64,000 nt of DNA, from the IMG/VR virus record IMGVR_UViG_3300044641_009805, positions 124,001 to 188,000 of that record. One strand, 5' to 3'. Made by a program: the position numbers and the translations under genes. The notes beneath the pieces were generated by a model. That model was not told the origin of the DNA. It ran no database searches and was given only the letters and a program-made list of their open reading frames with translations. Below, one piece after another: positions 6,008-56,684 of this stretch (its first letter is position 1; each line of letters opens with the position of its first letter).

Positions 6008-6008
6008 A

Positions 6009-13662: not shown

Positions 13663-13669
13663 TTGAACG

Positions 13670-14695: not shown

Positions 14696-14696
14696 T

Positions 14697-15839: not shown

Positions 15840-16362
15840 AGCTAAAGAATTAACACATCAAAAATTCTCATTAAGAGAAGTTTGCGATGATGATCATCTT
15901 TGGTTAGTAGAACTTCATAACGATCCTGAAGTTTTGAAAAACTTAACTAATCCTCAACCTATTACTTTAGAATCTCACTTAAATTGGTGGAATTCTTTGA
16001 ATAAAGAAAAAGAAAAAAGATACGTTTTTTGTGTTAATGAAGAAAAAGTAGGATTTTGCAAAATCTATTCAATAGATCGTAATAACAAAAATTGTTTATT
16101 AGGAGCAGATATACACAAAGACTATAGAGGAAAAGGGTTAGCAAAGCACATGTGGCAATTAATGCTTCATGTTTGTTTTAATGAGTTAAGTCTACACAGG
16201 GTTTCTTTAACCACAGCATCCTATAATTTGATAGGACAAAGAGTTTACAAAAATCTAGGATTCAAAGAAGAAGGTAGACAAATTGAATCGTTGTACAGAG
16301 AAGAAAAATATCATGATTCTATATGCATGTATTTGTTAAAACAAGACTGGAATAACAAATGA
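15826..16362 (+). CDS. GNAT N-acetyltransferase (PseH/RimL-like)
   Basis: ITLESHLNWW, YRGKGLA, VYKNLGFKEEG. Confidence 0.88.
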   Translation: MSTVEAKELTHQKFSLREVCDDDHLWLVELHNDPEVLKNLTNPQPITLESHLNWWNSLNKEKEKRYVFCVNEEKVGFCKIYSIDRNNKNCLLGADIHKDYRGKGLAKHMWQLMLHVCFNELSLHRVSLTTASYNLIGQRVYKNLGFKEEGRQIESLYREEKYHDSICMYLLKQDWNNK

Positions 16363-17965: not shown

Positions 17966-17967
17966 TC

Positions 17968-17996
17968 TTGATCATTTTTTTATTTTTTCTTATAAT
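17968..17996 (+). promoter_or_regulatory. Sigma70-type promoter, probably leaderless
   Basis: TTGATC-17nt-TATAAT-6nt-ATG(18003); no SD. Confidence 0.7.
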
Positions 17997-18002
17997 CTTT
18001 GT

Positions 18003-40422: not shown

Positions 40423-40881
40423 ATGGCTGATGTAAAATCAGATGTAGATAAAAATCTTTTCTTGATTATAAGAAATTCGTTGAACGATGCAGTTAATTTA
40501 GTTGCAAGCCCAGCTAGCTTTCAAGTCGGGTTGAGTGATTCTCCTTCTGATTTAACTTTGATGGGCAGATTTTCGTTATCATCTAAAGTCTATTATGCGA
40601 CAAGCGAGAATGGATATACCGTCAATTTAAGCAATGATGCAAGCATTGCTCTTATATCTATACCCATAAGAAACTCTGCTAAGGTGCTTTTGCCTTCTGG
40701 CCCTCGTGAAGGTCAAATAATCTTTATTAAGGATAGAGAAGGAATATGCTCTTCGGCACCAATGGTTATATCTGCATCTGAAAGTTTAATTGATGGAGCT
40801 TCTTCGATTGCTATAACTTCAGACTATGGTAAGAAGTGTCTGTGCTGGAATACTGACAGGTGGTCTGTCATCTCTGATTGA
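40423..40881 (+). CDS. Small virion protein with a gp9/gp10-like fibre-connector domain
   Basis: LLPSGPREGQIIFIKD...IDG...Y...W pattern. Confidence 0.55.
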   Translation: MADVKSDVDKNLFLIIRNSLNDAVNLVASPASFQVGLSDSPSDLTLMGRFSLSSKVYYATSENGYTVNLSNDASIALISIPIRNSAKVLLPSGPREGQIIFIKDREGICSSAPMVISASESLIDGASSIAITSDYGKKCLCWNTDRWSVISD

Positions 40882-41572: not shown

Positions 41573-41935
41573 TTAAATGGGTTTTAACTTACTAACAATC
41601 TTTTCAATTAATTTTGTATTGTCAGGTCCTAATGCTACACACACTAATTCGTTACCCTTTGTATTAGAGTGAGCCTCTATTCCCATGAACTCCGCTCGAT
41701 TTAAAATATCATGTAGTTGTTCTTCGGAATCTACCCCTAAGATAATTTGCGAAAAAGACCCAGTTAGCCATGAAACTTCGTCATTCGAGAGATTGACAAA
41801 AACCTGATCTGGTCTGGCGGCTTCATTATTTTCTATTAAAAACTTTACGGAAGCTGCGGCAACTTGTGAAGCGATTTCTCCTCTTCTCATGTTTAGATCG
41901 TTGCGTACCACTATGAATTGTTTTACATCTTCCAT
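41573..41935 (-). CDS. Peptidyl-tRNA hydrolase type 2 (Pth2)-like protein, degenerate active site
   Basis: KQFIVVRNDLNMRRGEIASQVAAA, IILGVDSEEQL, CVALGP; GAGGTG SD before the ATG at 41935. Confidence 0.8.
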   Translation of the reverse strand: MEDVKQFIVVRNDLNMRRGEIASQVAAASVKFLIENNEAARPDQVFVNLSNDEVSWLTGSFSQIILGVDSEEQLHDILNRAEFMGIEAHSNTKGNELVCVALGPDNTKLIEKIVSKLKPI

Positions 41936-41960
41936 TGTAACACCTCGTAAACAAGCCACG

Positions 41961-42464
41961 TCATTCTTCTTGATCATCTTGAAGAATTTCTTTTCTTACT
42001 TCCTCCAATATTTTACCAAGCCAGTTTTCTCCTACACCTCCTACTGTTCCCCAAAATCTATCGTTCCACCGATTTTCATTAATCAGTGGTCTGTTATCTG
42101 TTCCTTTTAATCTACAACGAATAAAAGGATTTTCAAACTTTTTTCTTATCAAATCCTTCATGATAGAGATTTTTTCTTCTTTCCAATCTTCTCTAACAAT
42201 GACAGATTGTCCCAATCTTTTAGCAAGATTGGGATTTTCAGCTTTTCTTATTAGTTCCCTCGTTTCTTGATTCAAGCTTTTTGCAGCTTGATATGCATGC
42301 TCAACAGAGGGATATAACTTTCCTTCAAAAGTTATCGACGAATTATAAAAATTAGAAAGGAACTCAAATCCATTTTTTTTAGAAAATCCTACAATCGGAT
42401 TACTCTCTTCTCTTAAATTCTTTGGATTTTCTAAGTCCTTTTGCATATAAATTTGATAATGCAA
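41961..42464 (-). CDS. NADAR (YbiA/DUF1768) family protein; start codon uncertain
   Basis: FLSNFY, YPSVEHAYQAAK, AKRLG, REDW, KKF, NDRFWG, GENWLGKILEEVR. Confidence 0.9.
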   Translation of the reverse strand: MHYQIYMQKDLENPKNLREESNPIVGFSKKNGFEFLSNFYNSSITFEGKLYPSVEHAYQAAKSLNQETRELIRKAENPNLAKRLGQSVIVREDWKEEKISIMKDLIRKKFENPFIRCRLKGTDNRPLINENRWNDRFWGTVGGVGENWLGKILEEVRKEILQDDQEE

Positions 42465-43108: not shown

Positions 43109-44866
43109 ATGTCAACAAACGACAAGAATAGATTTAGAAAAACTTATTCTTTTTTTAGACAGCAACCCATCTTTGCTTCAGGCGGTGGGGGCGGCGGCGG
43201 TGGTGGGGGTAATGGAGATCAATTTTGGTATTCTACCACCAATGATTCGATCTATACTACTGGGTCAGTTATAATTCGAGGAGATGAAACGGGGTTAGAC
43301 TCTCCTTTTGATGTTGGATCTGACGTATTTTTCTATGTCAGCGGTTCTATAGACGCCATTAATCCTAATGACAGCAAAGTGGCAGTTTTTGGTGGAGATC
43401 TTGTTGTCAGTGGTGCCTTTTTACTAGAAAGCGATTATCTTGAAATAACTGGCACGTTGGTCGTTACAGAAGGTGTCAGCGGATCCATTACAAAACTTGC
43501 TGATGGCACTTCTTATCTTGTAGCAGGTAGTAACATTACGATAACTTCTCAATCTAATGGATCTATTGTAATCTCTTCAACTGGTGGTGGTGGATCTTCA
43601 ATTAACTTTTTTGATTCTACGACTGCCGGATCAGTTTACACGACGGGATCATTTGCCTTTAGAGGTCAAGAGCTAATAGATTCTCCTTCTGACGTTGGAA
43701 CTGACGTCTTCTTTTTTGTCAGCGGTTCTACGGGCGCGGTCAGCAATCAAAAATCTCTTTTTGGAGGTGACGTAGTCGTAAGCGGTTCTTTCTTTGCGGA
43801 AGGCGACCGCCTAGAGATGACAGGAACTATCCTGGCGACTTCAGGGTTTAGCGGTTCGTTAACAAAACTCACTGATGGTACGTCTTATTTAGTCGCAGGA
43901 AACAATGTTAACATCGTTTCACAGTCCAATGGATCGATAGTAATATCTTCAACAGGTGGCGGAGGAGATAGCTTCTTTTCCTCAACGACGGCTGGTTCAA
44001 TTTATACAACGGGGTCAGCTGCATTCAGGGGTCAAGAATCTATAGATTCTCCAATAGACAAAGGTACGGACGTATTCTTTTATGTCAGCGGTTCCAAAGG
44101 TTCTCGAGACACGTCCGTAGCAGGCTCTTCGCTATTTGGAGGAGATGTAATAGTCAGCGGATCGACTTACATGTTGTCGGGTGCCATTGTACAAAATGGT
44201 CTCAGGGTCACAGGATCGTTAGATGTCGAAGGAGACATCGTCGACATATCTGGCTCTCTCATCGTCACGGGTTCCACTTACCTATCTGGTACTTTATTCC
44301 TTACGGGATCTATGTTTTCTGAAATGGGCAGCATTACAGCTGTTCAAGGATTCAGCGGATCATTAACAAAGTTGGCAGATGGAACTTCATACCTGGTGGC
44401 AGGAAACAATGTTAACATTGTTTCGCAGTCCAATGGTTCTATTGTGATCTCTTCTACGGGAGGAGGATCAAGCACAGTAAATCTCCAGTTCCTTGCTGGC
44501 ACGGTTTCTTCAGCAGCGCCGTCAGGGTCTATGGAATCGATCGGGATGGATTATCTGAATCTTTCAGCATTACCACCGGTTCCAACAAACTACACATTCT
44601 CAGCAATTTTAGCTACAACAGTTGGCACGACTGCATACATGGATCTTTACGATTACAATGGAATATTCAGCGGCGGTTCTCCTGGGCCCATATCCGGATC
44701 GGTGTTGACAGGATCGAGTCAGTCTTATACTTACCTAACAGCAAACTTGACGACTGCGATGTCTTCTCCTTCTGGCAACGGAATAATAGAAGCGAGGATA
44801 TGGTGCGATCCGACTGGATCAAATTTGAACGCAATATGTAAGTCAGCTAAACTGACGATAAGTTAA
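43109..44866 (+). CDS. Tail/head fibre-like protein with three internal repeats
   Basis: Three copies of STTxGSxYTTGS...DVFFxVSGS...FGGDxxVSG...SGSxTKLxDGTSYLVAG...SQSNGSIVISSTGGG; poly-Gly linker. Confidence 0.75.
   Translation: MSTNDKNRFRKTYSFFRQQPIFASGGGGGGGGGGNGDQFWYSTTNDSIYTTGSVIIRGDETGLDSPFDVGSDVFFYVSGSIDAINPNDSKVAVFGGDLVVSGAFLLESDYLEITGTLVVTEGVSGSITKLADGTSYLVAGSNITITSQSNGSIVISSTGGGGSSINFFDSTTAGSVYTTGSFAFRGQELIDSPSDVGTDVFFFVSGSTGAVSNQKSLFGGDVVVSGSFFAEGDRLEMTGTILATSGFSGSLTKLTDGTSYLVAGNNVNIVSQSNGSIVISSTGGGGDSFFSSTTAGSIYTTGSAAFRGQESIDSPIDKGTDVFFYVSGSKGSRDTSVAGSSLFGGDVIVSGSTYMLSGAIVQNGLRVTGSLDVEGDIVDISGSLIVTGSTYLSGTLFLTGSMFSEMGSITAVQGFSGSLTKLADGTSYLVAGNNVNIVSQSNGSIVISSTGGGSSTVNLQFLAGTVSSAAPSGSMESIGMDYLNLSALPPVPTNYTFSAILATTVGTTAYMDLYDYNGIFSGGSPGPISGSVLTGSSQSYTYLTANLTTAMSSPSGNGIIEARIWCDPTGSNLNAICKSAKLTIS
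43220..44470 (+). repeat. Three imperfect intragenic repeats of about 125-165 codons
   Basis: Protein-level repeats above; DNA shares e.g. gcaggaaacaatgttaacat. Confidence 0.8.
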
Positions 44867-44883
44867 TGAAAGAATGAAATAAC

Positions 44884-46080
44884 ATGGCAAAGTATAGAGC
44901 AAGAGTAGATTGTTACTTAGAACCTACGTTGGCAGATAGCGTCGGTGTTAACTCTAGAGCTAATGGCGAGTTCTTCGTGAATCTGGTACAACATATTTCA
45001 TCCAGTATGAATGACCTTGGGATCGAGATGCTTGCCTGGAACTATGGTCAAGGAGGTTCAGATTGGTCTTTTTGGAATGAACCTGGGTCGACAGGTCGAT
45101 ATGCTTTTGCTTGTTTTAGATTTCATTCGGCGTCTTTCGGCAAGTTTGATTGTTTGATCTACGAAAACACGGGTTCTTTCAACGGTCATACAGGCTCTAT
45201 TTATGTAAACAATCAAAACAGTAATTATTTTCAAGAAACATGTTTTTTTCAGGTTGGTATAGCGTTTGCATGTCATCCGAGTGGATCAGTACCTGACGTT
45301 TATCCATATACAGGAGGTCCTTGGGATGGCAGCTATGGACCTGGTGCGGATATTCAGACAGTAACAGAACTTTGGAAAACCACACCAGAAAGCAAAGGTG
45401 CTTTCTTCCCACGCCCAAATGGAATTTCAGGAGAAAGCTCTGGTTCAAGGGCCACCCTACAAGGTCTCGGCGGATATGACATGAATGGATCTAGAAATCA
45501 CTTCATCGTGTCCGAAGACAGTTTGACGATTCTCACGGATTCAGCAATGGATGGCCGTCATAGAATCATGCATTTCGGCCCATACACACCTCGTTCAGGT
45601 ACGACACCTACTCCTGAAAGCCCATACGTCATGTGGTCAAGTAACAATCCAGACAGCTTCTCACCATGGGTTCACTTCTATGGTGGTCAAATAGGCACAA
45701 CCTCTAGAAACGATGACAACATATACCAAGGAGCTCTTGCGCATCCTGATCTGTTGTCGGGATCAAGACGTTTCAGTTGGAATACTGTCGTAACAAGTGA
45801 CATGTTTTTAGGGTTGAATAAGTTTGTAGAGAATGGATCGTACGAAAAATTCCCTGTATGGGTCACTCTCAATGAAGGAACCGACTGCGGGACTTTAGGG
45901 ATCTTAAATCATCTCTGGTATGGAATAGGAATGCCAAATCTAAGCGTCTCTGTAGTCTCTTCATCAGCTGCATTCGGTAGAATGACGATGAATGAAAACA
46001 AGGTCATTGTTCCTTGGAGCGGAGATCCTCCAACCACCACGCCGTGGACGAGAAAAGGTAGAAACTTTAGCATAGGATGA
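44884..46080 (+). CDS. Virion protein, paralogue A
   Basis: Collinear with 46096..47286; near-identical N-terminal ~95 aa and C-terminal GRNFSIG. Confidence 0.7.
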   Translation: MAKYRARVDCYLEPTLADSVGVNSRANGEFFVNLVQHISSSMNDLGIEMLAWNYGQGGSDWSFWNEPGSTGRYAFACFRFHSASFGKFDCLIYENTGSFNGHTGSIYVNNQNSNYFQETCFFQVGIAFACHPSGSVPDVYPYTGGPWDGSYGPGADIQTVTELWKTTPESKGAFFPRPNGISGESSGSRATLQGLGGYDMNGSRNHFIVSEDSLTILTDSAMDGRHRIMHFGPYTPRSGTTPTPESPYVMWSSNNPDSFSPWVHFYGGQIGTTSRNDDNIYQGALAHPDLLSGSRRFSWNTVVTSDMFLGLNKFVENGSYEKFPVWVTLNEGTDCGTLGILNHLWYGIGMPNLSVSVVSSSAAFGRMTMNENKVIVPWSGDPPTTTPWTRKGRNFSIG

Positions 46081-46095
46081 CAAGAGGAATCTAAC

Positions 46096-47286
46096 ATGAC
46101 AAAGTATAGAGCAAGAGTAGATTGTTATTTACAACCCGCAGTGGGAGATTCAGCTGGTGTCAATTCCAGAGCAAACGGTGAATTCTTTGTTAATTTGATT
46201 CAACACATGTCTTCTAGCATGAACGACCTTGGAATCGAGATGCTAGCCTGGAATTACGGCGATGGCGGATCAGATTGGTCTTTTTGGGATGAACCTGGAG
46301 CGACAGGCAGAAATGCTTTTGCATGTTTTAGATTTCATTCTGCGTCTTTTGGAAAATTCGATTGCTTGATCTATGAGAACACTGGGTCCAATACTTCCGT
46401 ACGTACGCACACAGGATCTATCTTCATAGACAATCAAGACAGGCAATTCTTCGAGCAAGAAGGTTACTATCAAGTAGGTATTGCCTTTGCATGTCATCCA
46501 AGCGGATCTGTTCCTAACACATATCCTTATGTCGATGGCCCATGGAATGGTGGTTACGGAATGAGCGCTTCTATAGAGACCGTAGGTCCTGTTTGGAAAA
46601 CAACTCCAGCCGGCAAAGGAGCATTCTTCCCGAGACCGAACGGTGTACTAGGTCAGCTGTCTAGCTCAAGATCTTCTCTATCTGGAATTGCGGGTAGCAG
46701 TATGGATCAAAGCAAAAATCACTTCATTTTGTCTGAGGACAGCGTCACGATTCTTGTTGATGATGCTTCTGACGGTTATTCTAGAGTGATGCACTTTGGT
46801 CCTTACATTCCGAGGTCTGGATCTAACCCTGAAAGTCCGTATGTCATGTGGAACACGGGAGATGATAATGTTGCTCCTTGGATTCACGGATACGCCAACA
46901 CAATTGGAAGCTTCACCCTCGTTAGCAATGCACCACAAGGAGCCATTGCACACCCAGACTTGTCCAAAGGAGCTTTAAAGTTAAGCTGGGGGTTTTTAGC
47001 TCATGATTCTTCTAACGGATATAACAATTTCATCAACAGCGGATCATTTGAAAAATTCCCTGTGTGGGCTATTGTTAACGAAGGTACAGAAAGAGGAATC
47101 CTTGGTACTCTTAAACATCTAACACTTGGCGTTGGGATGAATAGTCTCACTGTCTCTACACTTTCTTCTTCAGCCGCGTTTGGACGTCCGACCACAGCAG
47201 AATCAAAAGTGCTGGTTCCGTGGGATGGAGTTCCTCCTCAATCATCTTCGCCTAATAGAACTGGTAGAAACTTTAGCATAGGTTGA
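46096..47286 (+). CDS. Virion protein, paralogue B
   Basis: GAGGA SD; tandem duplicate of 44884..46080. Confidence 0.7.
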   Translation: MTKYRARVDCYLQPAVGDSAGVNSRANGEFFVNLIQHMSSSMNDLGIEMLAWNYGDGGSDWSFWDEPGATGRNAFACFRFHSASFGKFDCLIYENTGSNTSVRTHTGSIFIDNQDRQFFEQEGYYQVGIAFACHPSGSVPNTYPYVDGPWNGGYGMSASIETVGPVWKTTPAGKGAFFPRPNGVLGQLSSSRSSLSGIAGSSMDQSKNHFILSEDSVTILVDDASDGYSRVMHFGPYIPRSGSNPESPYVMWNTGDDNVAPWIHGYANTIGSFTLVSNAPQGAIAHPDLSKGALKLSWGFLAHDSSNGYNNFINSGSFEKFPVWAIVNEGTERGILGTLKHLTLGVGMNSLTVSTLSSSAAFGRPTTAESKVLVPWDGVPPQSSSPNRTGRNFSIG

Positions 47287-47288
47287 TC

Positions 47289-47651
47289 ATGTCAGGAAAC
47301 GACTTTGCAGATTTCTTTCCGCCTGAAGTACAAAATCAGGTCTTTCCAGAAGTGTTCCAATCTAATGGTCAACACTCTTCTGCTGCTGAATTTACAAACT
47401 TAATTCCTGAGATTTTTCAAGATGCTGGTGCTTTAAAGACCGCAACTGAATTTGACCACACGACTCCTGAGGTATTCAAATATCAAATAATCACCACGAC
47501 GGGAGGAGCTCCTGCAATCAAGTATCGAATGAGAGGATACTATGTTGGAGGTTCAACGTACGAATTTTGGATTACAACGAATCCTGATTCAGCCAATCCC
47601 AGCGGGAATCCTCTTATCAACAAAGTTATCGACTCGATCATTGCATCATAA
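47289..47651 (+). CDS. Hypothetical virion protein with short PE(V/I)F repeats
   Basis: PEVQNQ / PEVFQ / PEIFQ / PEVFK. Confidence 0.55.
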   Translation: MSGNDFADFFPPEVQNQVFPEVFQSNGQHSSAAEFTNLIPEIFQDAGALKTATEFDHTTPEVFKYQIITTTGGAPAIKYRMRGYYVGGSTYEFWITTNPDSANPSGNPLINKVIDSIIAS

Positions 47652-47686
47652 AAGTATTATAATGAGACAATAAAAGACAAATTTAT

Positions 47687-48664
47687 ATGCCTGTCAAATT
47701 TAGAAGAATTGGAATAACCAACAACATTTATAATTCTGGATTCCCAGTTGGAAGACCAGTTCTCGGTCCTACTGGGCCGCAAGGGGAAACAGGGCCAGCT
47801 GGTCCGACAGGCCCCACCGGTCCGACAGGTCCTACCGGACCAACTGGTTCCGCCGGTTCAATAGGTCCTGTTGGTTCTACTGGGCCAACAGGACCGACTG
47901 GTCCATCAGGATCAACTGGCCCACAGGGAGATAAAGGTGAAACAGGCGCTACGGGTGATCGAGGCGAAACAGGCCCAGCAGGACCTACTGGTTCGACCGG
48001 CCCGCAAGGCGACCGAGCAGACAATGGCGCAACTGGTGCCACAGGTGATCAAGGTCCCACAGGCGCAACTGGCCCCACCGGTCCGACGGGACCTCAAGGT
48101 GACAGAGGAGATAATGGTGCGACCGGTGCCACAGGAGACAGAGGCGAAACAGGAGCAACTGGGCCCACGGGTCCGACGGGACCTCAAGGTGACAGAGGAG
48201 ATAATGGCGCAACTGGCGCAACTGGTGCAGCGGGCGATCGTGGTGCGACAGGAGCCACAGGTGCTACAGGCCCGACAGGAACAGCGGGTGGTAGTTTCTT
48301 GTTTTACTTCGGTGCCACAAGCATAAGCGTTGATGCGACGAGATATTTGTATCCTGGAAGTTCTACTTCAGCAGCATCATCTACTATCATTGAAATTCCG
48401 ATGCCGATAAGAGGTAATGTCACTAAGATGTATCTTGCTCAATTGGCTGGTTCAGGAACTAGATCCATCGACTATAAACTATTCGTAAATGGATCTGCAT
48501 CAGGCATGGGTGTGTCAACAACCACAAGCGGCACTGGCGCAAATACGACGGACTCAATAGCGATATCATTTGGTGATAAAATTTCCGTGGCGTCAGTACC
48601 AGCTTCAGGAACAGGCACAACCCCATCTAATATAATGATAGTCATAGTTCTTGAGCCGACATGA
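47687..48664 (+). CDS. Collagen-like fibre protein (Gly-X-Thr rich) with a C-terminal beta domain
   Basis: Continuous Gly-X-Y from about 47765 to 48290, dominated by GPT/GAT/GET/GST; ~120-aa beta-rich C-terminus. Confidence 0.9.
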
Positions 48665-48708
48665 TTCAATTAATTTACTTTAACAAAAACAGAAATAACA
48701 TATAAGTC

Positions 48709-48888
48709 ATGCCAGCAACAACAGACGTATTATTGATGAAGATAAAGCAATTAGAGCTTCAAATTCAAGAAACCATCAAGCAAGGTCAAGATGCTTCTGC
48801 TTTGCAAGAACAATTGAACGAAATGAAAAGTTCTTTTATGTTAAAGAATGAAGCTTTGAGCAACAAATCTAACATTCTAAAAGGGTAA
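48709..48888 (+). CDS. Small coiled-coil protein, 59 aa (below the ORF-track cut-off)
   Basis: MPATTDVLLMKIKQLELQIQETIKQGQDASALQEQLNEMK...ILKG*; fills the gap between two genes. Confidence 0.6.
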   Translation: MPATTDVLLMKIKQLELQIQETIKQGQDASALQEQLNEMKSSFMLKNEALSNKSNILKG

Positions 48889-48902
48889 TAGAAATAAATA
48901 AT

Positions 48903-49121
48903 ATGCAAAAGGTAGACTTATATCAACCAATGATCAGCAATCGAGTCGGAGCACCTCCGCTAGTTCTCAACGTGGGTGTACAAAGAAGTTCTGCTGAAGT
49001 TATGGGAGGCCCAGTGGAGAATGCTCTGCGTGCAGAACACTATGTGTTGTTGTCAGCTCTTCCTGATGAACTTAGAGAAAGAGTGAAGACTGCGGTTCAA
49101 GCTTTGTTGTCTTCCATTTGA
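48903..49121 (+). CDS. Hypothetical protein
   Basis: 72-aa ORF immediately before the endolysin. Confidence 0.55.
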   Translation: MQKVDLYQPMISNRVGAPPLVLNVGVQRSSAEVMGGPVENALRAEHYVLLSALPDELRERVKTAVQALLSSI

Positions 49122-49125
49122 TATT

Positions 49126-49914
49126 ATGAAAACGTTATATCCAGGAATGAAAGGTGCCGATGTAAAACGTTGGCAAATTTTTCTTAGAGGGTTATCCAAC
49201 GACTCTAATGTAATCGTCAATGGCGATTATGATTTGATTACGCTTGATGCGACAAAAGCATTCCAAACTTCTAAGGATCTCGACGCGGATGGCATAGTAG
49301 GTCCTAAAACCATATCTGCAGCTTTGTTAGATGGATTTGACGTAGTAAAAGATAATTCAGATGGTGATCTCGGACCTAATTGGCCCCCACGGCCTGATAA
49401 TAATCCGCTGACTATTCTTGAAAGAATGAAATTATTTGGAAAGTTCTCTTTTGTTTCTTCCCCGACGCAGACAAATCCAGAGGCAATAAAGATCACTGAC
49501 GATTGGTCAAAAGATAATATAGTCGTGGTGCAAGTCCCTCAACTAATTGGAGTACCAGGGTCTTTACAAAATGGTGCCGCCCATGTTCACAGGAAGATAT
49601 CAAAACAATTCTTAAAATTGTTTGATGATTGGCAATCAGCGAATTTAAATGAAAAAATTCTAACCTGGGGTGGATCATGGGTGCCTCGGTTTGTGAGAGG
49701 ATCAAGAACTTCTCTATCAAACCATGCTTGGGGCACAGCATTCGACATAAACCACCAGTGGAATGGGTTGGGCATACGTCCTGCTCTTCGGGACGAAAAG
49801 GGATCAGTCAGAGATCTGGTTGACATCGCATACCAAAACGGGTTTTATTGGGGCGGATGGTTTAAGTCCAGACCTGATGGAATGCACTTTGAGGCTTATA
49901 AAATAATCGAGTGA
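49126..49914 (+). CDS. Endolysin: PG-binding domain plus M15 Zn peptidase
   Basis: GMKGADVKRWQ...FQ...LDADGIVGPKT; SNHAWGTAFD; WGG...DGMHFE. Confidence 0.9.
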   Translation: MKTLYPGMKGADVKRWQIFLRGLSNDSNVIVNGDYDLITLDATKAFQTSKDLDADGIVGPKTISAALLDGFDVVKDNSDGDLGPNWPPRPDNNPLTILERMKLFGKFSFVSSPTQTNPEAIKITDDWSKDNIVVVQVPQLIGVPGSLQNGAAHVHRKISKQFLKLFDDWQSANLNEKILTWGGSWVPRFVRGSRTSLSNHAWGTAFDINHQWNGLGIRPALRDEKGSVRDLVDIAYQNGFYWGGWFKSRPDGMHFEAYKIIE

Positions 49915-49932
49915 TTATTTAATCAACATCAT

Positions 49933-50316
49933 ATGGCATTTAGAGACGCCTCACGAACTAGAAAAGCATATTCGTATTACAGGCCACGTCCGCGTTTGCA
50001 ATACGTATCAACTCCTGAAGAGACGCAACAATTATTACAGACAATCAATAATTTAGCGTCATTGACAACGGTGACCATGATATGGAATGAGACTTTAACT
50101 GGTGTGACCGATGATTTGAACACCATTTTTGAACTGTCTTATACTCCCGTCGCTGACACTGAAGTAATGTTATTCGTGAACGGAGTTCTTCAACACAGAA
50201 ATAATGGAGAAGCTAAAGATTTTAGCATATCAGGCAAAGTAATCACCATGAATTTTCCTCCGCACACGGGAGATGAAGTCACCGCGACGTACGCATACGA
50301 TCCTAACGATCCTTAG
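49933..50316 (+). CDS. Small virion decoration/fibre-type protein
   Basis: ETLTG...FVNGVLQ...DFSISGKVITM..PP..GD..TATY beta module; N-terminal motif shared with 43109. Confidence 0.6.
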   Translation: MAFRDASRTRKAYSYYRPRPRLQYVSTPEETQQLLQTINNLASLTTVTMIWNETLTGVTDDLNTIFELSYTPVADTEVMLFVNGVLQHRNNGEAKDFSISGKVITMNFPPHTGDEVTATYAYDPNDP

Positions 50317-50379: not shown

Positions 50380-51555
50380 ATGTCTACGTTTTCAACGACG
50401 ATTGGTCCTACGCCGTTCGGATTTTTTGATTCGGACGCAACTTTTCAATCAGAAGCCGACGCAATGGTCTTGTTCGTCAAGCGCAAACTCGGTGATGATG
50501 TGTTGTCTGTAGAATTGACCAAAAAAGAGATATGGGCATGTTTTGAAGAAGCTTGTTGTGAATATAGTCGTTTAATACATGAGACAAAAATAACGTCCGA
50601 ATTGACAAACTTGTTGGGCTTGCCTACAGGAAGTGCAGATCTGACGAACAAATATGCCAGACAAACGCTGGAACACTTGTTACGTATGGCAGAACCATAC
50701 GCTTCCCAAGCTTTCGTAGGAGGATCTTACGATGCGACGTTAGGGTATCTTGACCTCGCCACTGGTCGACAAGATTATGACATTTATTCTGAAGTAAAAG
50801 ACAACGAAACAGGAATTGGAATCTATGATTCCATGGTATCAGGATCAAAAGGCAAGTTGAAGATTGCTGAAGTTTTTCATTTTGAGCCCCTTGCCGCTCA
50901 ACACTTTTTATTAAATGCATCTAATATTACTAACTTTTTGGCAACCAATTTTAATTACGAATCTTATGTTAACTCTACAGTTTTTTATGTGTTGCCTGTT
51001 TTTGAAGACGTGTTAAGAAGAGGGATGCTAGAGACAGCTTTTAGGGTTAGAAGGTCAAATTATAGCTACGAAATTATGGGCAGAAAGTTGAGAATTTATC
51101 CCATACCCACCACAGATTTGCAGACAGGAAGGCTGTACATCAAAGTCGTAAAACCGCAGAATCCTCTTATGCCAGCTTACCATGATGATTCAATTTATGG
51201 TATATCTGGTCCCAGTAACGTTCCTTTAGGTAATATTCCATTCGCGTCGATAAATCAACCTGGGAGACAATGGATTAGACAGTTTACTTTAGCCTTATGT
51301 AAAGAGTTGTTAGGATTGATTCGATCAAAATTTCAAACAGTTCCCATACCTAATGCCGATCTTCAGCTTAATGGCGAGGCTTTAATTACTCAAGCTCGCG
51401 AAGATAAAGAGAGATTAAACACTCAGATGAAAGAATTTTTGGCAAATTTGACATATGCAAAATTGCTTGAGACAGACGCCCTCGCCGCTGAAAACTTGAA
51501 CAAGCAGCTTAGATTTATCCCTATGCCGTTAGGCAAGGCTATTTCGATAGGATAG
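50380..51555 (+). CDS. Neck / head-tail adaptor (gp13-like)
   Basis: KRKLGDDVLSVEL, KLRIYPIP, WIRQFTLALCKELLGLIRSKF..VP.P...QLNG. Confidence 0.85.
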   Translation: MSTFSTTIGPTPFGFFDSDATFQSEADAMVLFVKRKLGDDVLSVELTKKEIWACFEEACCEYSRLIHETKITSELTNLLGLPTGSADLTNKYARQTLEHLLRMAEPYASQAFVGGSYDATLGYLDLATGRQDYDIYSEVKDNETGIGIYDSMVSGSKGKLKIAEVFHFEPLAAQHFLLNASNITNFLATNFNYESYVNSTVFYVLPVFEDVLRRGMLETAFRVRRSNYSYEIMGRKLRIYPIPTTDLQTGRLYIKVVKPQNPLMPAYHDDSIYGISGPSNVPLGNIPFASINQPGRQWIRQFTLALCKELLGLIRSKFQTVPIPNADLQLNGEALITQAREDKERLNTQMKEFLANLTYAKLLETDALAAENLNKQLRFIPMPLGKAISIG

Positions 51556-51570: not shown

Positions 51571-52236
51571 ATGGCTCGTCTTTTTATCACACAAAGAGAA
51601 ATTAATTTCATTTCTGACATCACAAAAGAAGTGATAAAAGATGTGATCGGCCAAAAGATCTATTACTATCCTATCTCAGAAACTAAGACCAAGACTCATG
51701 AAGTTTATGCTGAAGCTATGCAAAAAATATTCGATAATCCAATCGTTATTGATGTTTTAGTAAGCAATGAATTTCAGATCGATACAAAGATAGATAAGTT
51801 TGGAGTAGACACTAATTTTAAATCAGAGGTTTACATCCAACATAGAGACATGATAGAAAAAGGTATTAATCCTGCAATCGGCGATTATTATTCTTTTAGC
51901 GATGTTTTTTATGAAATAACTGAATACAGATTCATGAGAAACATTTACGGACAGGCTGAAAACATTGACGGAGTCGCGTTGGTGGGACTCAGGGTACGTG
52001 ATAGTCAATTCAAGGCTCTTGTTAAAGGCCCGACTGGCATTGAGTACACCGATAAAGATGCTACGCAAACCACATTCGTACAGCAAAGAGGTGTTGAAGA
52101 AAATGCCGAAGGTCCGACAGCCGACGTTAGAGATTTGGTGAAGCAAGGGGTTCTTGACCCACCAATCTCAGGTCCCAGAGAAGTTTCCAGCAAAGGAGAT
52201 TCTACTGGTGCTGGTAATTCTTTTTATGATGAATGA
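51571..52236 (+). CDS. Neck / head-closure protein (gp14-like)
   Basis: GQKIYYY, EVYAEA, KFG, PAIGDY...FYEI; follows gp13. Confidence 0.7.
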   Translation: MARLFITQREINFISDITKEVIKDVIGQKIYYYPISETKTKTHEVYAEAMQKIFDNPIVIDVLVSNEFQIDTKIDKFGVDTNFKSEVYIQHRDMIEKGINPAIGDYYSFSDVFYEITEYRFMRNIYGQAENIDGVALVGLRVRDSQFKALVKGPTGIEYTDKDATQTTFVQQRGVEENAEGPTADVRDLVKQGVLDPPISGPREVSSKGDSTGAGNSFYDE

Positions 52237-53573
52237 GCAGAACTATGCCTACCAGATTTAATTCTAACAGCAATCCTCAGTTTGGCGTGCCAGGGTTAAT
52301 TGATAAAACGCACCAAGGAACGGCTGAATTTACAATCCCTCCCGTCGGATTGGAAGACGTTGATGTTTCGATTTTTAATTTGTTTGATAAAGAGTTAACC
52401 TTGCAAGTCAATGGTGATAATTCAGTACCAAAAAATGTTCCTGTTATCTTTGCGTCGGGAGAAAAATGGGCAATCTTGAAGAAGAGAAAAGCCTTAAGAG
52501 ATAGAAATAATTCTTTGATACTTCCTTTGATCACTATCGTAAGGACGGGAATTTCCCAAAATTCAGACGAAGACATCGCCGGTAGAGGTATAAATCAACA
52601 AACCGGTGAAATCATCATAAAAAGACGCCTTGATAAATCCGATAGAAAATATCAAAATCTTATTAATCGATTTTTATTAAAAAACCAACTGAATGTAGCG
52701 ACTAATCCCAACAAAGAATACGTCGATGGTCAGATCTTGACTGACAGAACTGTCGGAGAAGATGAAGAATCATCAGCCATAATAGATGGAGCTTGGCTTG
52801 CAGATATCAAGAAAAAAAATATCTATGAGACCATAGTCATTCCTGCTCCTCAATTTTATAACATTCGTTATGAGATTACTCTGTGGACTCAATACACGCA
52901 ACATATGAATCAGATTTTAGAAAATATTGTTGCTTCTTTTTTACCGCAAGGTAATTCTTGGAAGCTTAACACGACCAAAGGATACTGGTTCATCGCTAAA
53001 GTTGAGGATAATTCATACGAACCCGAAAATAACGTCGATGACATGTCACAAGAGGAGAGAATCATCAAATATAAATTTAATGTAAAAGTTCTCGCTTACT
53101 TGTTTGCCACGCAGTCTCCTGGAACTGGGGTTCCAATAAAACGTTATGTTTCATCTCCGATTATAAAATTTGAAACCGTTGCGCCAAAAGACGATGATCC
53201 CGCGTCGCCTATCAATTTAGTTGAAGATCCTTTCCTCGGATCCGATGATCCGACTCTTCCGTTGTCTGACACCAAAAATAATAGAGAAGATCAACGCAGA
53301 AGCGGTACTAAACTATATTCTCCAACGGACTCTGCTGTCTCAAATGATCCTGCACTACAAACCAGGTCATCCAAACAAAATAGACCAGTGTACCAAAAAA
53401 TAATTACTCAAAACTCTTCAGGTAAAAATGTTGCGACTTACGCTAGGGTTTTTAGAACATCCAATGCGTCAGGAGAAACTGTCATAAAACCGTCAAATGA
53501 TTTTTCTTCAAAATCTAATCCTGCGGCTGCTGACACGCTACTAGGTGATCTAACATACGAAACTACTAAGTGA
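52233..53573 (+). CDS. Tail terminator / sheath stabiliser (gp15-like)
   Basis: VPVIFASGEKW, LPLITIVRTGI, P.FYNIRYEITLWT...MNQILE. Confidence 0.75.
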   Translation: MSRTMPTRFNSNSNPQFGVPGLIDKTHQGTAEFTIPPVGLEDVDVSIFNLFDKELTLQVNGDNSVPKNVPVIFASGEKWAILKKRKALRDRNNSLILPLITIVRTGISQNSDEDIAGRGINQQTGEIIIKRRLDKSDRKYQNLINRFLLKNQLNVATNPNKEYVDGQILTDRTVGEDEESSAIIDGAWLADIKKKNIYETIVIPAPQFYNIRYEITLWTQYTQHMNQILENIVASFLPQGNSWKLNTTKGYWFIAKVEDNSYEPENNVDDMSQEERIIKYKFNVKVLAYLFATQSPGTGVPIKRYVSSPIIKFETVAPKDDDPASPINLVEDPFLGSDDPTLPLSDTKNNREDQRRSGTKLYSPTDSAVSNDPALQTRSSKQNRPVYQKIITQNSSGKNVATYARVFRTSNASGETVIKPSNDFSSKSNPAAADTLLGDLTYETTK

Positions 53574-53648: not shown

Positions 53649-56600
53649 ATGGCTGAACAAGTTTTTAGATCACCTAATTTTTTTGAAAGAGAAATTGAGC
53701 TTAAGGCACCGCCTCCGTCAGGACCCGTCGGAGTTCCTGCAGGCGTGATTGGTACTTCTAAAAAAGGACCGGCTTTCGTACCAGTTGCTGTTTCTAACTT
53801 TAACGAATTCGTAAGCATTTTTGGCGATCTAGATCCAAAAAAGTTTGGTCCCTATGCCGTCAATGAGTTTTTGAAAAATAGAACAGCGTTAACGTATATG
53901 CGCGTCCTAGGCGGAGGCTCTAATCGTTCTTTAAGCGACGTGCAAACGACGCTTATAACTGGTAAGGTAAAGAATGCCGGATTTAAGACGATCGGGACTA
54001 AAACTGATTTAACCGAGGATCAATACAAACGACATGTCGGGGGTGTGCAGTTCATCGTAGCTGATCACACGATCGATACGGCGGATGAACCAGCAGGAAT
54101 GCCTATGTTCACTGACAATGATTCTAGGACTCAAACCAGCAACGTTTCGCTTGTTAGAGGCGTCGTTCTTATGGCATCTGGCGCTAGAATGCTTGTTTTA
54201 GACGGAGATCAAAGCATAGGAACCAGCTTCGATGGTGTGGTTTCTGTTGATGATGAAGGAGCTGTAAAGAGCGGAAAAGTCAAGTTAGTCATTTCATCCA
54301 CTTTAGGATCAGCTTTCTCTTATGATGATGGGAAAGCAGGATTGAAGGTTTATACAGCATCTCTTAACCCTACTAGCGCAGATTACTTTGGTAAAGTGTT
54401 AAATAAGGATCCTGAAAAATTTGCGCAGTATCAGCACTTGCTATACACGGACTTTGCTGTAGATGATGAAGTTGCCTCGGTTCTTGATAATGATAAGGTA
54501 GCAATATTATCAGGATCAAGCTTTAATAGTCCAGCATCTGGAGATCCATCACTTCATTTCAGCGGAGCATTTGGTTCATTCGATACTAGATTCACGGCAC
54601 CCAAAACTCCGTACTTTATTTCTCAGCCTTTCGGAACGTCAGAATATGATTTGTTTGCCGTTGAATCTATCGACGATGGAGAATACGCAAACAGTCTTTA
54701 CAAGGTGTCGATCAGCAATCTTAAGGTTTCTGAGAATGACGCATATGATTATGGAACATTCAATCTACAAATTCGCGATTTTAATGATACGGACGTAAAT
54801 CCAGTTATCATAGAAGAGTTTGTAAATTGTTCACTCGATCCCGACGCCGACAACTATGTGGCAAAGTTAGTAGGAGATCGCAAAGTGACTTATGACTTTG
54901 ATCAAGACATATTGGTAGAAAGACGCATCGTTACGACAGGAAAGTACCAAAATATTTCAAAGTTTGTCAGAGTAGTCATGTCTCCCGCTGTGGAAGAGAA
55001 AAAAATCCCTGCAAAATCTTTGCCTTTCGGTTTCAGAGGGTTTGAGCTTCTGAAGACAAACGATAATTTGAAAGATTCTGTTCCAACAAGAAATAGACTA
55101 TGGGGATCAGTAGGTACCGGAGGCTCAAGTTTAGCAAGTTCTATTCTTCCTCCTGTACCTTACAGATATAAGGTAACCCGCGGCGCAGTTTCATCCGCTG
55201 CAAACTGGAGTGGCGAACCTGGACCTCTTGAGTCTACAAATCCAGCTTATTACTGGGGCGTGAAGTTTGAAAGGAATACAGAACCCTTAAACAACAACCT
55301 GAGTGAAGAAAAGAACGTTCTCATTGAAAGCTTCACAAAGTTCATGGGAATCAAAAAGCTAGATGTTCTAGTCACGGGTTCTGGTGCTGACACTTTCAAT
55401 AACAACAAATTCAGCCTTTCCAAGGTCGCTTTTGCAAATGGATCTATAGCTGAGTTAACTGGCACAGTTAGAACTCACATGAGAGAAGCAGCATATATCA
55501 GAAATGCCAAGGTTGATCCATCAACTTACACGATCTACGATTCAGGATTCGGAGATAGAATCACTTTAGCGAGCTTACTATCAAATGGAGAATCCTATCA
55601 GTTCAACAGATTCTCAACGTTTGCAAAGTTCTCAACATTCATGTGCGGAGGATTCGACGGATTGAATATCCTAGACCCAGCTGCCCGTCGAATGAATGAT
55701 AAAGCAACTTCATTTGAAACTCCTAAGGGAGCAGCCTCAACCACATATACATCACCAGGTCTTGCTTCTAACGTGGCTGGAACTGGAGTTGACAATAACT
55801 CAGTTAGTTCTTATGTCACAGCAATTGACGTAATGACTGATCCTCTGCAGGTCAATGTGAATCTGCTTGCCCTCCCAGGTATTCGTGAGGATTATCTCAC
55901 GAATTACACATCAAAGAAAGTAAGAGATTATGGATTGGCCATGTACATCATGGACATACCAAATTATGACGACAACAGTGATAGAATCTATGATGATTCT
56001 ACGAACAGAATCAACATCGAAAATACAGCAGCTATCTTCGAAGAAAGAACGTTCGATAACAACTACGTCGCGACCTACTTCCCCAACGTCTATGTCAATG
56101 ATACGACGAACAGCAGATACGTGAAAGTTCCTGCGTCTGTTGCAGCTCTCGGTGCATTAGGGTTCAACGACTTTATTGCATATCCTTGGTTTGCACCTGC
56201 AGGATTCAACCGCGCCGCGCTTGACTTCGTTAACAACGTAGAGGTCAGATTGAACGTCTCGGATAGAGATCGTCTATACGACGCTAGAATCAATCCTATA
56301 GCGACATTCCCAAGATTGGGATTCGTTATCTACGGACAGAAGACGTTACAAATAAGAAAGTCTGCTCTTGATAGAGTTAATGTGAGACGTTTGCTCTTAG
56401 AGGTTAAGAGATTAATCATCAACATAGCTAACAGGATCATATTTGAACAGAACACACCAGCCGTCAGAAACAAGTTTGTGGCGGATGCAATTCTTCAACT
56501 CAGCCTTATTCAGACCCAGGCAGGCATTGAGGCCTACCAGGTCATCATGAATGAGACGAACAACACACAAGAGGACATCGATCTCAATCGTTTGAATGGT

Positions 56601-56684
56601 CGAATCGTCGTCGTCCCAACGAGAGCAATTGAATTTATTGCGATCGATTTCATCGTAACAAACGCCGGCGTCGAATTTGTCTGA
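53649..56684 (+). CDS. Tail sheath protein 1 (gp18-like)
   Basis: SPNFFEREI, GTSKKGPAFVP, GGFDG, PWFAPAGFNR, INPIATF, YGQKTLQ, LDRVNVRRLL, IEFIAIDF. Confidence 0.95.
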   Translation: MAEQVFRSPNFFEREIELKAPPPSGPVGVPAGVIGTSKKGPAFVPVAVSNFNEFVSIFGDLDPKKFGPYAVNEFLKNRTALTYMRVLGGGSNRSLSDVQTTLITGKVKNAGFKTIGTKTDLTEDQYKRHVGGVQFIVADHTIDTADEPAGMPMFTDNDSRTQTSNVSLVRGVVLMASGARMLVLDGDQSIGTSFDGVVSVDDEGAVKSGKVKLVISSTLGSAFSYDDGKAGLKVYTASLNPTSADYFGKVLNKDPEKFAQYQHLLYTDFAVDDEVASVLDNDKVAILSGSSFNSPASGDPSLHFSGAFGSFDTRFTAPKTPYFISQPFGTSEYDLFAVESIDDGEYANSLYKVSISNLKVSENDAYDYGTFNLQIRDFNDTDVNPVIIEEFVNCSLDPDADNYVAKLVGDRKVTYDFDQDILVERRIVTTGKYQNISKFVRVVMSPAVEEKKIPAKSLPFGFRGFELLKTNDNLKDSVPTRNRLWGSVGTGGSSLASSILPPVPYRYKVTRGAVSSAANWSGEPGPLESTNPAYYWGVKFERNTEPLNNNLSEEKNVLIESFTKFMGIKKLDVLVTGSGADTFNNNKFSLSKVAFANGSIAELTGTVRTHMREAAYIRNAKVDPSTYTIYDSGFGDRITLASLLSNGESYQFNRFSTFAKFSTFMCGGFDGLNILDPAARRMNDKATSFETPKGAASTTYTSPGLASNVAGTGVDNNSVSSYVTAIDVMTDPLQVNVNLLALPGIREDYLTNYTSKKVRDYGLAMYIMDIPNYDDNSDRIYDDSTNRINIENTAAIFEERTFDNNYVATYFPNVYVNDTTNSRYVKVPASVAALGALGFNDFIAYPWFAPAGFNRAALDFVNNVEVRLNVSDRDRLYDARINPIATFPRLGFVIYGQKTLQIRKSALDRVNVRRLLLEVKRLIINIANRIIFEQNTPAVRNKFVADAILQLSLIQTQAGIEAYQVIMNETNNTQEDIDLNRLNGRIVVVPTRAIEFIAIDFIVTNAGVEFV

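Follow-up and report, generated by a model that had tools for sequence, protein, structure and literature searches.

Two genes that open with the same peptide

The window, 64,000 nucleotides (positions 124,001 to 188,000) of the 278,435-bp virus record IMGVR_UViG_3300044641_009805, holds a neck and tail module in T4-like order: gp13-like adaptor, gp15 sheath stabiliser, sheath and tube (matches to phrog_211, PF16724 and sheath and tube families). The same window contains a 15-kb nucleotide-sugar/glycosyltransferase island. Two ORFs, 43109-44866 (585 aa) and 49933-50316 (127 aa), encode proteins whose N-termini both read D-x-x-R-x-R-K-x-Y-S-[FY]-[FY]-R-x-x-P, a peptide that we call the tag: the larger protein begins MSTNDKNRFRKTYSFFRQQP (from 43109) and the smaller MAFRDASRTRKAYSYYRPRP (from 49933). 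In window coordinates, the features are:

40423-40881, plus strand: 152-aa stand-alone N-terminal anchor domain (phrog_972 match), in relatives a fibre 152-2591 aa long
43109-44866, plus strand: tagged fibre gene, 585 aa, with tag, poly-Gly linker, three repeats and C-terminal domain
43121-43168, plus strand: tag copy 1, residues 5-20 of the fibre, DKNRFRKTYSFFRQQP (tag profile A2, E 4e-14)
43181-43210, plus strand: poly-glycine linker G25-G34, directly behind the tag
43223-44467, plus strand: three fibre repeat units, residues 39-161, 167-285 and 289-453
44468-44863, plus strand: C-terminal non-repeat domain of the fibre, residues 454-585
49933-50316, plus strand: gene of the small tagged protein, 127 aa, directly preceding the gp13-like neck gene
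49945-49992, plus strand: tag copy 2, residues 5-20 of the small protein, DASRTRKAYSYYRPRP
50014-50061, plus strand: predicted helix, residues 28-43 (AF2 model, pLDDT 82-88)
50071-50307, plus strand: predicted beta-jellyroll body, residues 47-125 (AF2, pLDDT about 90), akin to XD2/XD3 domains and the T7 gp17 N-terminus
50380-51555, plus strand: gp13-like head-tail adaptor, 391 aa from ATG (alternative start TTG 50332; phrog_211)
51571-52236, plus strand: neck protein candidate in the T4 gp14 position (by position; no family match)
52233-53573, plus strand: gp15-like tail sheath stabiliser/terminator with a long C-terminal extension (PF16724, E 3e-13)

The sequence-only reading of this DNA had described a shared N-terminal peptide on two otherwise unrelated virion proteins, and both ORFs and their N-termini are exactly as it described. 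The bodies do differ (poly-Gly and repeats in one, a helix and a beta-sandwich in the other), and BLAST of the 585-aa body against the 127-aa body found no similarity. Gene context and fold make it plausible that both products are virion proteins. In the fibre, the repeats are of about 120 aa each, share the ending GS[IL]TKLxDGTSYLVAGxNxxIxSQSNGSIVISSTGGG and give a weak, sub-threshold match to CBM_X2 (24.9 bits against a cut-off of 28.9 bits); the C-terminal domain is, by its position, presumed to be the distal or receptor end.

Scanned in all six frames, the window and the whole record have the strict motif at these two sites only. Residue frequencies predict about 4e-7 strict matches and 0.02 matches to a looser form, and thirty Markov-simulated genomes produced none. 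The two copies differ in their codons, and these many synonymous differences exclude a recent DNA duplication.

A conserved, terminal and portable tag

The motif is conserved among homologues: in distant ones the tag keeps 13-16 of its 16 residues (81-100%), as against about 40% for the bodies (28-35 of ~78) and 3-10 of 26 for the adjacent linker or helix. Compared in pairs, the codons of the tag show 1117 synonymous versus 291 non-synonymous differences and, read from these codons, the tag is under protein-level selection. In class-A homologues the poly-Gly linker is also conserved, at 7-12 Gly.

A profile search of 1.84 billion (1.84e9) protein representatives recovered the tag in 119 clusters, N-terminal in 108 and C-terminal in 10, with tandem pairs in 21; in one further cluster it appeared to be internal, the result of a wrong start call. 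Similarly, in an IMG/VR pattern scan the motif began 3-6 residues past the chosen Met in 42 of 43 tagged ORFs, the sole exception (L049) being one where an upstream ATG had been picked. The bodies joined to the tag, 55-1985 aa long, are unrelated to one another: repeat fibres, DWKQSVRAAS fibres, and proteins with Laminin_G_3, TIG or FN3-like domains, among them a tandem-tagged FN3 protein whose gene adjoins a tailspike gene. Conversely, the same type of fibre body also carries other N-termini: of the more than 1100 homologues of the fibre, many share its tag, while others begin with unrelated sequences. No tag match was found in 50,697 phage records, no Pfam or PHROGs family matched over the tag, and we found no description of the motif in the literature.

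Phage fibre genes are mosaic, and the peptide might be a functionless recombination remnant, or a chance likeness of two N-termini. The tiny chance expectation, the excess of synonymous changes, the far greater conservation of the tag than of its flanks and its always terminal position across the 119 clusters make this hardly credible. In fact, a peptide that is more conserved than its flanks, terminal, followed by a linker and joined to unrelated bodies bears the signature of a docking tag. We therefore lean, with slightly more confidence than doubt, towards a terminal docking tag that would mount interchangeable appendages on the tail apparatus. Its carriers would be one broad group of uncultivated large T4-related myophages.

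A basic and aromatic peptide could also serve otherwise, by binding nucleic acid or the host envelope, as a recognition site for a modifying enzyme, or as a targeting or processing signal removed in assembly. The composition (rich in R, K, Y and F, with an invariant Y-S pair) would suit such roles, and so would the glycosylation island, 13 of whose 16 genes are present in G004 and 15 in G005, both tag-bearing, while most are missing in G006. However, on fibre-type proteins the tag occupies the virion-proximal end, with a linker behind it; it occurs at either terminus and also in tandem, and the tagged bodies are external-type domains (fibres, LamG, FN3, TIG) rather than internal or DNA-binding proteins. 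T4-type capsid-targeting sequences are N-terminal only and occur on internal proteins. We consider these other roles improbable.

Two tags per phage, in two flavours

Well-covered genomes and loci each carry exactly two tags, either singly (G000, which is joined by G022, G004, G005, L061, L063 and L195) or as tandem pairs (L196-L200). The flavours differ systematically: the small protein has R-[TS]-R-K-[AV] where the fibre has R-[FLYI]-R-K-[TIV]. Tags that always come in twos and in distinct flavours are easier to reconcile with two related sockets, or with a daisy chain, than with one site. Thus, of the earlier proposal of a modular tag attaching interchangeable fibres to one site, the modularity holds well (a discrete, portable peptide at chain ends, with a linker behind and many unrelated bodies), whereas the one site is doubtful.

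Tags in twos might instead bind each other, for example by forming, between two trimers, a beta-zipper or a barrel of six strands; the jellyroll-anchored small protein and the fibre would then be one split fibre joined at the N-termini, and tandem tags would fold back. The variable positions are size-complementary (T/S and A in the small protein, F/L/Y/I and T/I/V in the fibre), and in the AF2 model of a double-tag protein both tag cores are predicted as beta-strands, a weak hint at pLDDT 54-63. But at this low confidence the two strands are non-adjacent, lying at opposite edges of a four-strand meander, and tandem-tag proteins have the bulky residue in both copies, so that size complementarity is not general. 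Near-invariance over 119 clusters is also more easily explained by one conserved third partner. Pairing between tags thus seems to us a poor prospect.

The small protein and its neighbours

In VIA-align comparisons, the small-protein body resembled CBA120 TSP4 187-250 (XD2; Z 8.2, rmsd 1.7 A over 63 residues), the T7 gp17 N-terminus (Z 8.3), TSP4 XD3 (Z 7.3) and T4 gp10 158-255 (Z 7.1); for a small beta-sandwich a Z of about 8 is borderline and can be reached by unrelated folds. The protein also has a weak phrog_2710 tail fibre match, and its body occurs without the tag in other proteins. Its modelled helix is possibly a trimerising stalk of variable length, the helix region bearing a 10-residue insertion in some homologues. 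In the AF2 monomer model the tag is disordered (pLDDT 48-65). The charge of the body ranges from 0 to -10 across homologues; since acidity is not conserved, a simple electrostatic fit between tag and body is unsupported.

As to the identity of the small protein, we rejected fibritin: the model has one 16-residue helix and a beta-sandwich, with no segmented coiled coil or foldon; Pfam and PHROGs gave no fibritin family match and the structural neighbours include no fibritin.

A neck location can still be argued by position. In T4, the fibritin gene (wac) lies immediately upstream of gene 13, as the 127-aa gene lies before the gp13-like gene (50332/50380), and the N-terminal end of fibritin anchors a trimeric coiled-coil appendage, six trimers forming the collar and six the whiskers. 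Here, both tags could dock independently on a dodecameric gp13-like ring, with the 127-aa protein as a stubby collar and the 585-aa fibre as whiskers. The twelve T4 copies bind gp13 domain III by their N-terminal domains in two non-equivalent sets (PMC12929629), which would explain two tag flavours, and among the structures nearest to the small-protein body are neck-associated chains from DT57C/T5, phage 812, Milano and P74-26. However, the fibre gene travels with baseplate genes: in the relatives compared it is always behind the baseplate module and three reverse-strand genes, and it stays there even when the neck genes are 87-97 kb away (G004, G005). Moreover, the number of positions separating phages with and without the small tagged gene is 0 in the gp13-like protein, 6 in the next neck protein and 14 in the gp15-like protein (which is longer in phages with that gene), and the small gene is absent in relatives whose gp13-like protein is 77-85% identical. 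The fibritin anchor also differs from the tag, being a folded domain some 50 residues long that contains nothing like the motif, and T4 uses one protein for both sets where two are found here. Docking on the neck ring is, to our mind, unlikely.

Other observations concern the neck genes. The gp13-like protein, a candidate neck receptor by analogy with T4 only, has 134 relatives at >=72% identity and is annotated 'head completion protein' in relatives. Gene order in relatives is lysin-like, small protein, gp13-like, the adjacency being kept or split by two inserted reverse-strand genes; in the close relatives L089 and L105 the small tagged gene has been lost while the neck proteins have stayed near-identical, which weighs against the docking-tag reading. 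A complex prediction of the tag with the gp13-like and next neck proteins scored 0.00, uninformative either way. Concerning the capsid, which the sequence-only reading had offered beside the tail, nothing points there; what gene context and folds indicate is the baseplate-fibre apparatus or else the neck.

Nearer the fibre, the 152-aa anchor domain is a candidate hub. Its gene accompanies the tagged fibre and is absent when the fibre has only a degenerate tag: G006 has neither this gene nor the small tagged gene, and the tag of its syntenic fibre is degenerate and displaced. Its profile (A6) reaches CBA120 TSP4 106-168 (XD1) with an E of 1e-3 only. By sequence, we identified no gp10-like two-XD hub in this genome and no XD2/XD3-type domain in its baseplate proteins besides that of the small protein; within the fetched loci of L195-L200 no XD-like partner was seen.

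A model for appendage docking

To explain these results, we propose that a basic/aromatic linear motif of ~17 residues, carried on a flexible linker, would tether appendage proteins to the tail apparatus. The system would be bipartite, each phage deploying two tags of slightly different flavours: in the window, tag 1 on a repeat fibre (tag, poly-Gly, shaft) and tag 2 on an adaptor-like protein (tag, helix, jellyroll). Sockets on trimeric beta-jellyrolls of the XD type would receive the tags, each probably entering as an edge beta-strand, a mechanism modelled on branched receptor-binding protein (RBP) complexes such as KP32 gp37-gp38, G7C gp66-gp63.1, CBA120 TSP4 and T4 gp10 with gp11/gp12. The 127-aa protein may itself offer one socket; in that case this adaptor would be attached to the baseplate or neck and would carry the fibre.

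In a broader form, the tag would be a universal two-plug connector, placed at either chain end, singly or in tandem, and mounting any protein, be it a fibre, a lectin or an FN3/TIG domain, on a conserved two-socket hub in many large uncultivated phage lineages. One socket would possibly lie on a free-standing tagged adaptor, giving daisy-chained, re-combinable appendages. We hold this broader form to be a speculative extension, rather less probable than improbable.

Comparison with known attachment systems

By analogy, the closest known kind would be the conserved N-terminal docking peptide of secondary receptor-binding proteins, of which the tag may be read as a new sequence family. Such peptides are described in the Klebsiella phages KP32 (gp38), K11 and KP34 and in E. 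coli phage G7C (gp63.1); in KP32 gp38, deletion of the first 29 aa abolishes virion incorporation, and the docking peptide can bring a foreign enzyme onto the virion (PMC13352976). As here, the KP32 and G7C peptides are short (29 aa in KP32 gp38), N-terminal and conserved while the rest varies, and their partner is a T4 gp10-like XD beta-jellyroll of the primary RBP, a type of fold that the 127-aa protein may share (borderline Z of about 8). Unlike them, our tag is shorter and strongly basic/aromatic, shows no sequence similarity to them, is found on both members of the pair, including the carrier of the XD-like domain, and may be C-terminal or in tandem. KP32 and G7C are podophages, whereas the tag belongs to large T4-related myophages from metagenomes, where we infer binding. 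Thus, given no sequence homology to known docking peptides, membership of this kind is functional and analogous only.

XD2/XD3-type domains are documented docking platforms for partner N-termini: T4 gp10 (with gp11/gp12) and CBA120 TSP4-N (with TSP1-3) each form one hub with XD2 and XD3 surfaces, to which two distinct trimeric partners, a short one and a fibre-like one, attach by their N-termini (PMC8825819). These two surfaces parallel the rule of two tags, and the gene order here (baseplate, fibre and, further on, small protein and neck gene) is a further likeness. The partners of these hubs, however, dock via folded N-terminal domains and not via a shared linear motif.

A more remote parallel is the adenovirus fibre, a trimer that is anchored in a penton base groove, across a symmetry mismatch, by a short conserved N-terminal peptide (FNPVYPY) on a flexible tail. 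That motif is mentioned in PMC8156859 and PMC5850374; the analogy is of mechanism only, virus lineage, sequence and receptor (a capsid vertex) being unrelated.

What a portable tag would mean

Attachment modules decide which receptor-binding proteins a phage carries and are handles for re-targeting phages. Docking peptides known so far come from a few cultured podophages and from Ackermannviridae; as a connector, a tag that occurs at either end of more than 100 unrelated bodies would be unusually compact and general. It would also provide a sequence signature for appendage genes in metagenomic phages whose structural proteins otherwise match nothing, and the rule of two tags per phage offers a testable hypothesis on the wiring of branched fibre complexes in T4-related jumbo phages. 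Should the two-plug connector prove true, no known virion-attachment module would be shorter or more portable, and we envision it as a plug-and-play handle for phage display and host-range engineering.

A terminal peptide kept at the protein level

Two proteins encoded in the window begin with the same basic/aromatic tag of about 17 residues, D-x-x-R-x-R-K-x-Y-S-[FY]-[FY]-R-x-x-P:

43109-44866: tagged fibre, a 585-aa repeat fibre; N-terminus MSTNDKNRFRKTYSFFRQQP
49933-50316: small tagged protein, 127 aa; N-terminus MAFRDASRTRKAYSYYRPRP

Both ORFs and their common N-terminal peptide are as the sequence-only reading had described them, and a six-frame scan of the whole genome gives no third copy of the motif. 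The chance expectation for the strict motif is ~4e-7, with 0 matches in 30 simulated genomes. The two copies differ in their codons at many positions, and thus their likeness is maintained at the protein level.

The motif is conserved among homologues. We found 34 homologues of the small protein, and in those at ~40-48% overall identity the tag is identical at 13-16 of 16 residues, as against 3-10 of the next 26 and 28-35 of the ~78 residues of the far more divergent body. Among 17 distinct DNA versions of the small-protein tag, pairwise codon differences are 1117 synonymous versus 291 non-synonymous, the latter falling mostly at the "x" positions of the motif. When tags from three protein classes are aligned, D5, R8, K11 and Y13 are invariant and R10, S14 and R17 nearly so.

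One tag on many bodies

The tag heads ~35 of the 120 best fibre homologues; in other homologues the same repeat body follows very different N-termini (MALITNNISGS..., MAVPFKSTVFTGG..., MAGKTDRTGVQYAFKK...). Class A tags read DKNR[FL]RKTYSFFRQQP and run into 7-12 glycines, and class B tags read [KR]D[AS]QR[YF]RK[IV]YSYYRPQPR and lead into a DWKQSVRAAS-type body. tblastn matches to the class B N-terminus (Mycobacterium phage Phrappuccino gp70 "head decoration", Thermus phage YS40 and others) were rejected as tag homologues because the match is to the DWK.SVR body domain, outside the tag. The small-protein body likewise occurs untagged in more distant contigs, and the related phage genome G006 carries it 2-3 times within a single untagged protein of 330 aa.

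Scanning IMG/VR with a degenerate DNA pattern gave 40 stretches, with tagged bodies of 109-1400 aa, and in 42 of 43 tagged ORFs the motif begins 3-6 residues past the chosen start Met. In the exception, locus L049, an upstream ATG had been chosen, and in its other occurrences this gene starts 5 residues ahead of the motif. A profile search of 1.84 billion representative proteins (E 1e-3 or better) extended this to 119 clusters: 91 with one N-terminal tag (body lengths 55-1985 aa), 17 with two tandem N-terminal tags, 6 with one and 4 with two C-terminal tags. In the remaining cluster the tag seems internal because of a mis-called start, an in-frame Met preceding it.

The tagged bodies include Laminin_G_3 proteins, one TIG-domain protein, ~180-aa FN3-like proteins that adjoin a tailspike gene wherever context was fetched, and ~530-aa proteins whose C-terminal tag is followed by KGGSNPSK. 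Tiny proteins of 60-120 aa (P0158, P0162, P0170, P0179 and relatives) consist of two tandem tags and C-terminal TE.GD.L.TE repeats only; they may serve the same sockets as plugs or connectors. A Laminin_G_3 domain, the class found on several of the tagged proteins elsewhere, is also present in a 1166-aa baseplate-region protein of the window (31732-35232).

The tag has no match in Pfam, PHROGs or the searchable literature, and a 30-aa tag query has no tblastn match in 50,697 phage records. Cultured phage records gave no match to the region by megablast or to the small protein by tblastn, and the tag profile has no match in Microcystis phage Mel-JY01 or a Flavobacterium immuto phage, the nearest isolates.

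Two tags per system

In each sufficiently covered record there are exactly two tags. One small protein and one fibre are tagged in G000 (apparently this genome), in the phage genomes G022, G004 and G005, and in the contigs of loci L061 and L063; L195 has two C-tagged proteins (525 aa and 156 aa), and L196-L200 have one protein with a tandem pair. Where a record has a single tag, it is a fragment in which either the neck region or the baseplate-fibre region is missing. The two tags of a genome differ consistently, R-[TS]-R-K-[AV] in the small protein versus R-[FLYI]-R-K-[TIV] in the fibre.

L195, L198, L199 and L200 represent a sister lineage of the same phage group, and at 25-76% identity they have ClpP, a helicase, PIN/PhoH and two large unknown genes in common with this genome. 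Their tagged genes lie in a variable cassette, with PhoH on one side and a conserved 327-aa gene on the other; the latter is without known relatives and its Atlas model is poor. The cassette, a hypervariable set of tagged and fibre-like genes, spans 8700-17411 in L195, where it includes four neighbours of similar size (432-457 aa), 7129-16764 in L199 and 10001-11195 in L200. In this genome the junction between PIN/PhoH and the 327-aa gene is empty.

A predicted small jellyroll behind an unstructured tag

In the AF2 model of the small protein (mean pLDDT 81) the tag is unstructured (pLDDT 48-65) and is followed by a helix (28-43) and a beta-sandwich (49-122). Foldseek returned weak matches, all of them to phage tail, neck and fibre-anchor chains. 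The closest structural neighbours are consistently small jellyrolls that phages use for attachment or branching, among them XD2 and XD3 of the CBA120 TSP4 branching hub.

Structural neighbours of the small tagged protein by VIA-align (Z; r.m.s.d. / aligned residues); the Z values are borderline on the tool's own calibration
Klebsiella phage KP1 baseplate protein 160-255: 8.7; 3.9 A / 77
T7 gp17 N-terminal domain: 8.3; 2.3 A / 66
CBA120 TSP4 187-250 (XD2): 8.2; 1.7 A / 63
CBA120 TSP4 261-334 (XD3): 7.3; 2.8 A / 71
T4 gp10 158-255: 7.1; 2.9 A / 80

In a model of a double-tag protein, of low confidence (mean pLDDT 58.6), the tag cores TYSYS and RKTYS both form edge strands in a sheet of four, a hint that the cores may take strand form. 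An electrostatic fit between basic tag and acidic body (+6 / -9 in the window) was considered, but dropped because the charge pattern is not conserved.

Gene context: baseplate or neck?

The window, bases 124001-188000 of its source record, is part of a large T4-related myophage; the record is linear, 278,435 bp long and of 84% estimated completeness. The window encodes a gp6-like baseplate wedge protein and other large proteins of the baseplate region, with baseplate proteins encoded between 28338 and 40419, and just beyond it lie the major head protein, large terminase, UvsX and a gp41-like helicase. The closest relatives in culture, Microcystis phage Mel-JY01, Flavobacterium immuto phages and Rhodothermus phage RM378, are remote, their gp13-like proteins being 23-32% identical; in IMG/VR at least 134 contigs have a gp13-like protein at least 72% identical.

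Genes around the two tagged genes
40423-40881: 152-aa stand-alone gene, equal to the 150-aa anchor domain that heads fibres of 383-2591 aa in relatives
41573-41977 and 41961-42464, minus strand: PTH2 peptidyl-tRNA hydrolase and NADAR genes, in the reverse-strand set between baseplate and fibre genes, conserved clade-wide
50332/50380 (start region), after the small tagged gene: gp13-like head-tail adaptor, phrog_211
52233-53573: gp15-type sheath stabiliser (gp15-like terminator), PF16724, E 3e-13
within the window: three tandem sheath paralogues and the tube protein

The small tagged gene is flanked by an M15 peptidase gene and the gp13-like gene, the place that wac takes in T4; some relatives have an insertion of two reverse-strand genes at this locus. 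The T4 neck carries twelve fibritins on gp13, in two non-equivalent sets (PMC12929629). A T4-type neck, in which the tags would dock on the gp13-like protein, is the main alternative to XD-type sockets, and the position of the small gene agrees with it. In the gp13 tree the small tagged gene is restricted to two subclades, where L089 and L105 show nested losses, and it is missing from relatives with near-identical neck proteins. Positions that separate phages with and without it number 0 in the gp13-like protein, 6 in the next neck protein and 14 in the gp15-like protein; naming a receptor from these was rejected as too confounded by phylogeny. A complex prediction of the 30-aa tag with the gp13-like and next neck proteins gave an ipSAE of 0.00, uninformative on binding either way.

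The fibre gene is linked to baseplate genes. Its order is always the baseplate module, a gene with a conserved N-terminal 150 aa, the conserved reverse-strand set with PTH2 and NADAR, and then the fibre, which in G004 and G005 keeps its place 87-97 kb away from the neck genes. This linkage, the lack of distinguishing gp13-like positions and the relatives without the small gene make the neck the less likely site.

The 150-aa domain has a profile match (E 1e-3) to CBA120 TSP4 in its XD1 region (domain limits from PMC8825819). Domain and tagged fibre co-occur in 10 of 10 informative records. G006 lacks the domain and also the small tagged gene, and its syntenic fibre starts with an extended, degenerate tag (...NDRQRARKVYGSIRRVP...). 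A phylogenetic profile over G000, G004, G005 and G006, with one informative tag-poor genome, gives two leads, the 152-aa anchor gene and a sugar island. The 152-aa gene represents a truncated fibre or else a stand-alone adaptor. PHROGs, Pfam and PDB sequence searches found no gp10-like hub among the baseplate proteins.

The sugar island (4467-18935, 15 kb) holds nucleotide-sugar and polysaccharide genes: an NTP transferase, epimerases/dehydratases, GT2- and GT4-type glycosyltransferases and a UDP-glucose dehydrogenase. Mostly missing in G006 and largely present in G004/G005, it might serve glycosylation of Ser/Thr-rich fibres or host-surface remodelling.

Other genes of the structural block
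44884-46080 and 46096-47286: a tandem pair of paralogues (398 and 396 aa; 63% identity) next after the tagged fibre; they match no family, lack homologues in G004-G006, and may be distal parts of a fibre, receptor-binding proteins or chaperones
47687-48664: 325-aa collagen-like protein between both tagged genes, with a long G-X-Y run (PF01391) and a non-collagen C-terminal domain
49126-49914: M15 peptidase that carries a peptidoglycan-binding domain at its N-terminus; it immediately precedes the small tagged gene, is inverted in some relatives, and may be a virion-associated lysin or an endolysin
53649-56684, 56737-59808 and 60011-63076: the sheath paralogues (1011, 1023 and 1021 aa; 28-52% identical)

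The C-terminus of the gp15-like terminator is a low-complexity extension of ~140 residues. This extension is longer in phages with the small tagged gene than in those without (442-451 versus 412-432 aa), and only in the former is it closed by a conserved LLGDLTYE motif. In the first two sheath paralogues the C-terminal domain match is just below the Pfam cut-off. At least these two are kept in relatives, and G004/G005/G006 have a single locus for the second and third. A sheath made from, or choosing among, three ~1000-aa paralogues is unusual.

A proposed variant of known docking peptides

Terminal docking peptides are of a known kind. In KP32, the first 29 residues of gp38, a secondary receptor-binding protein, are needed for incorporation and carry a foreign enzyme onto the virion via the T4 gp10-like branching domain of gp37 (PMC13352976). 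XD2 and XD3 provide two docking surfaces, and the same principle operates in G7C gp63.1/gp66, CBA120 TSP1-4 and T4 gp10 with gp11/gp12 (PMC8825819). Unlike these peptides, the tag described here occurs at either terminus, in tandem and on both partners. We read it as a family new in sequence, and as an unusual variant of the known docking peptides.

The sequence comparisons support well its reading as a modular terminal docking peptide, one that would bind a virion socket. Conservation, chain-end position and the many bodies sustain this part of the earlier proposal; its "one site on capsid or tail" is probably too simple. We envision that the two tags, on proteins that are presumably part of the virion, would occupy two related XD-type sockets, perhaps by strand insertion, with the 127-aa protein as a free-standing tagged adaptor that possibly supplies one of them. 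The relevance of the tag is mainly to phage appendage architecture and engineering.
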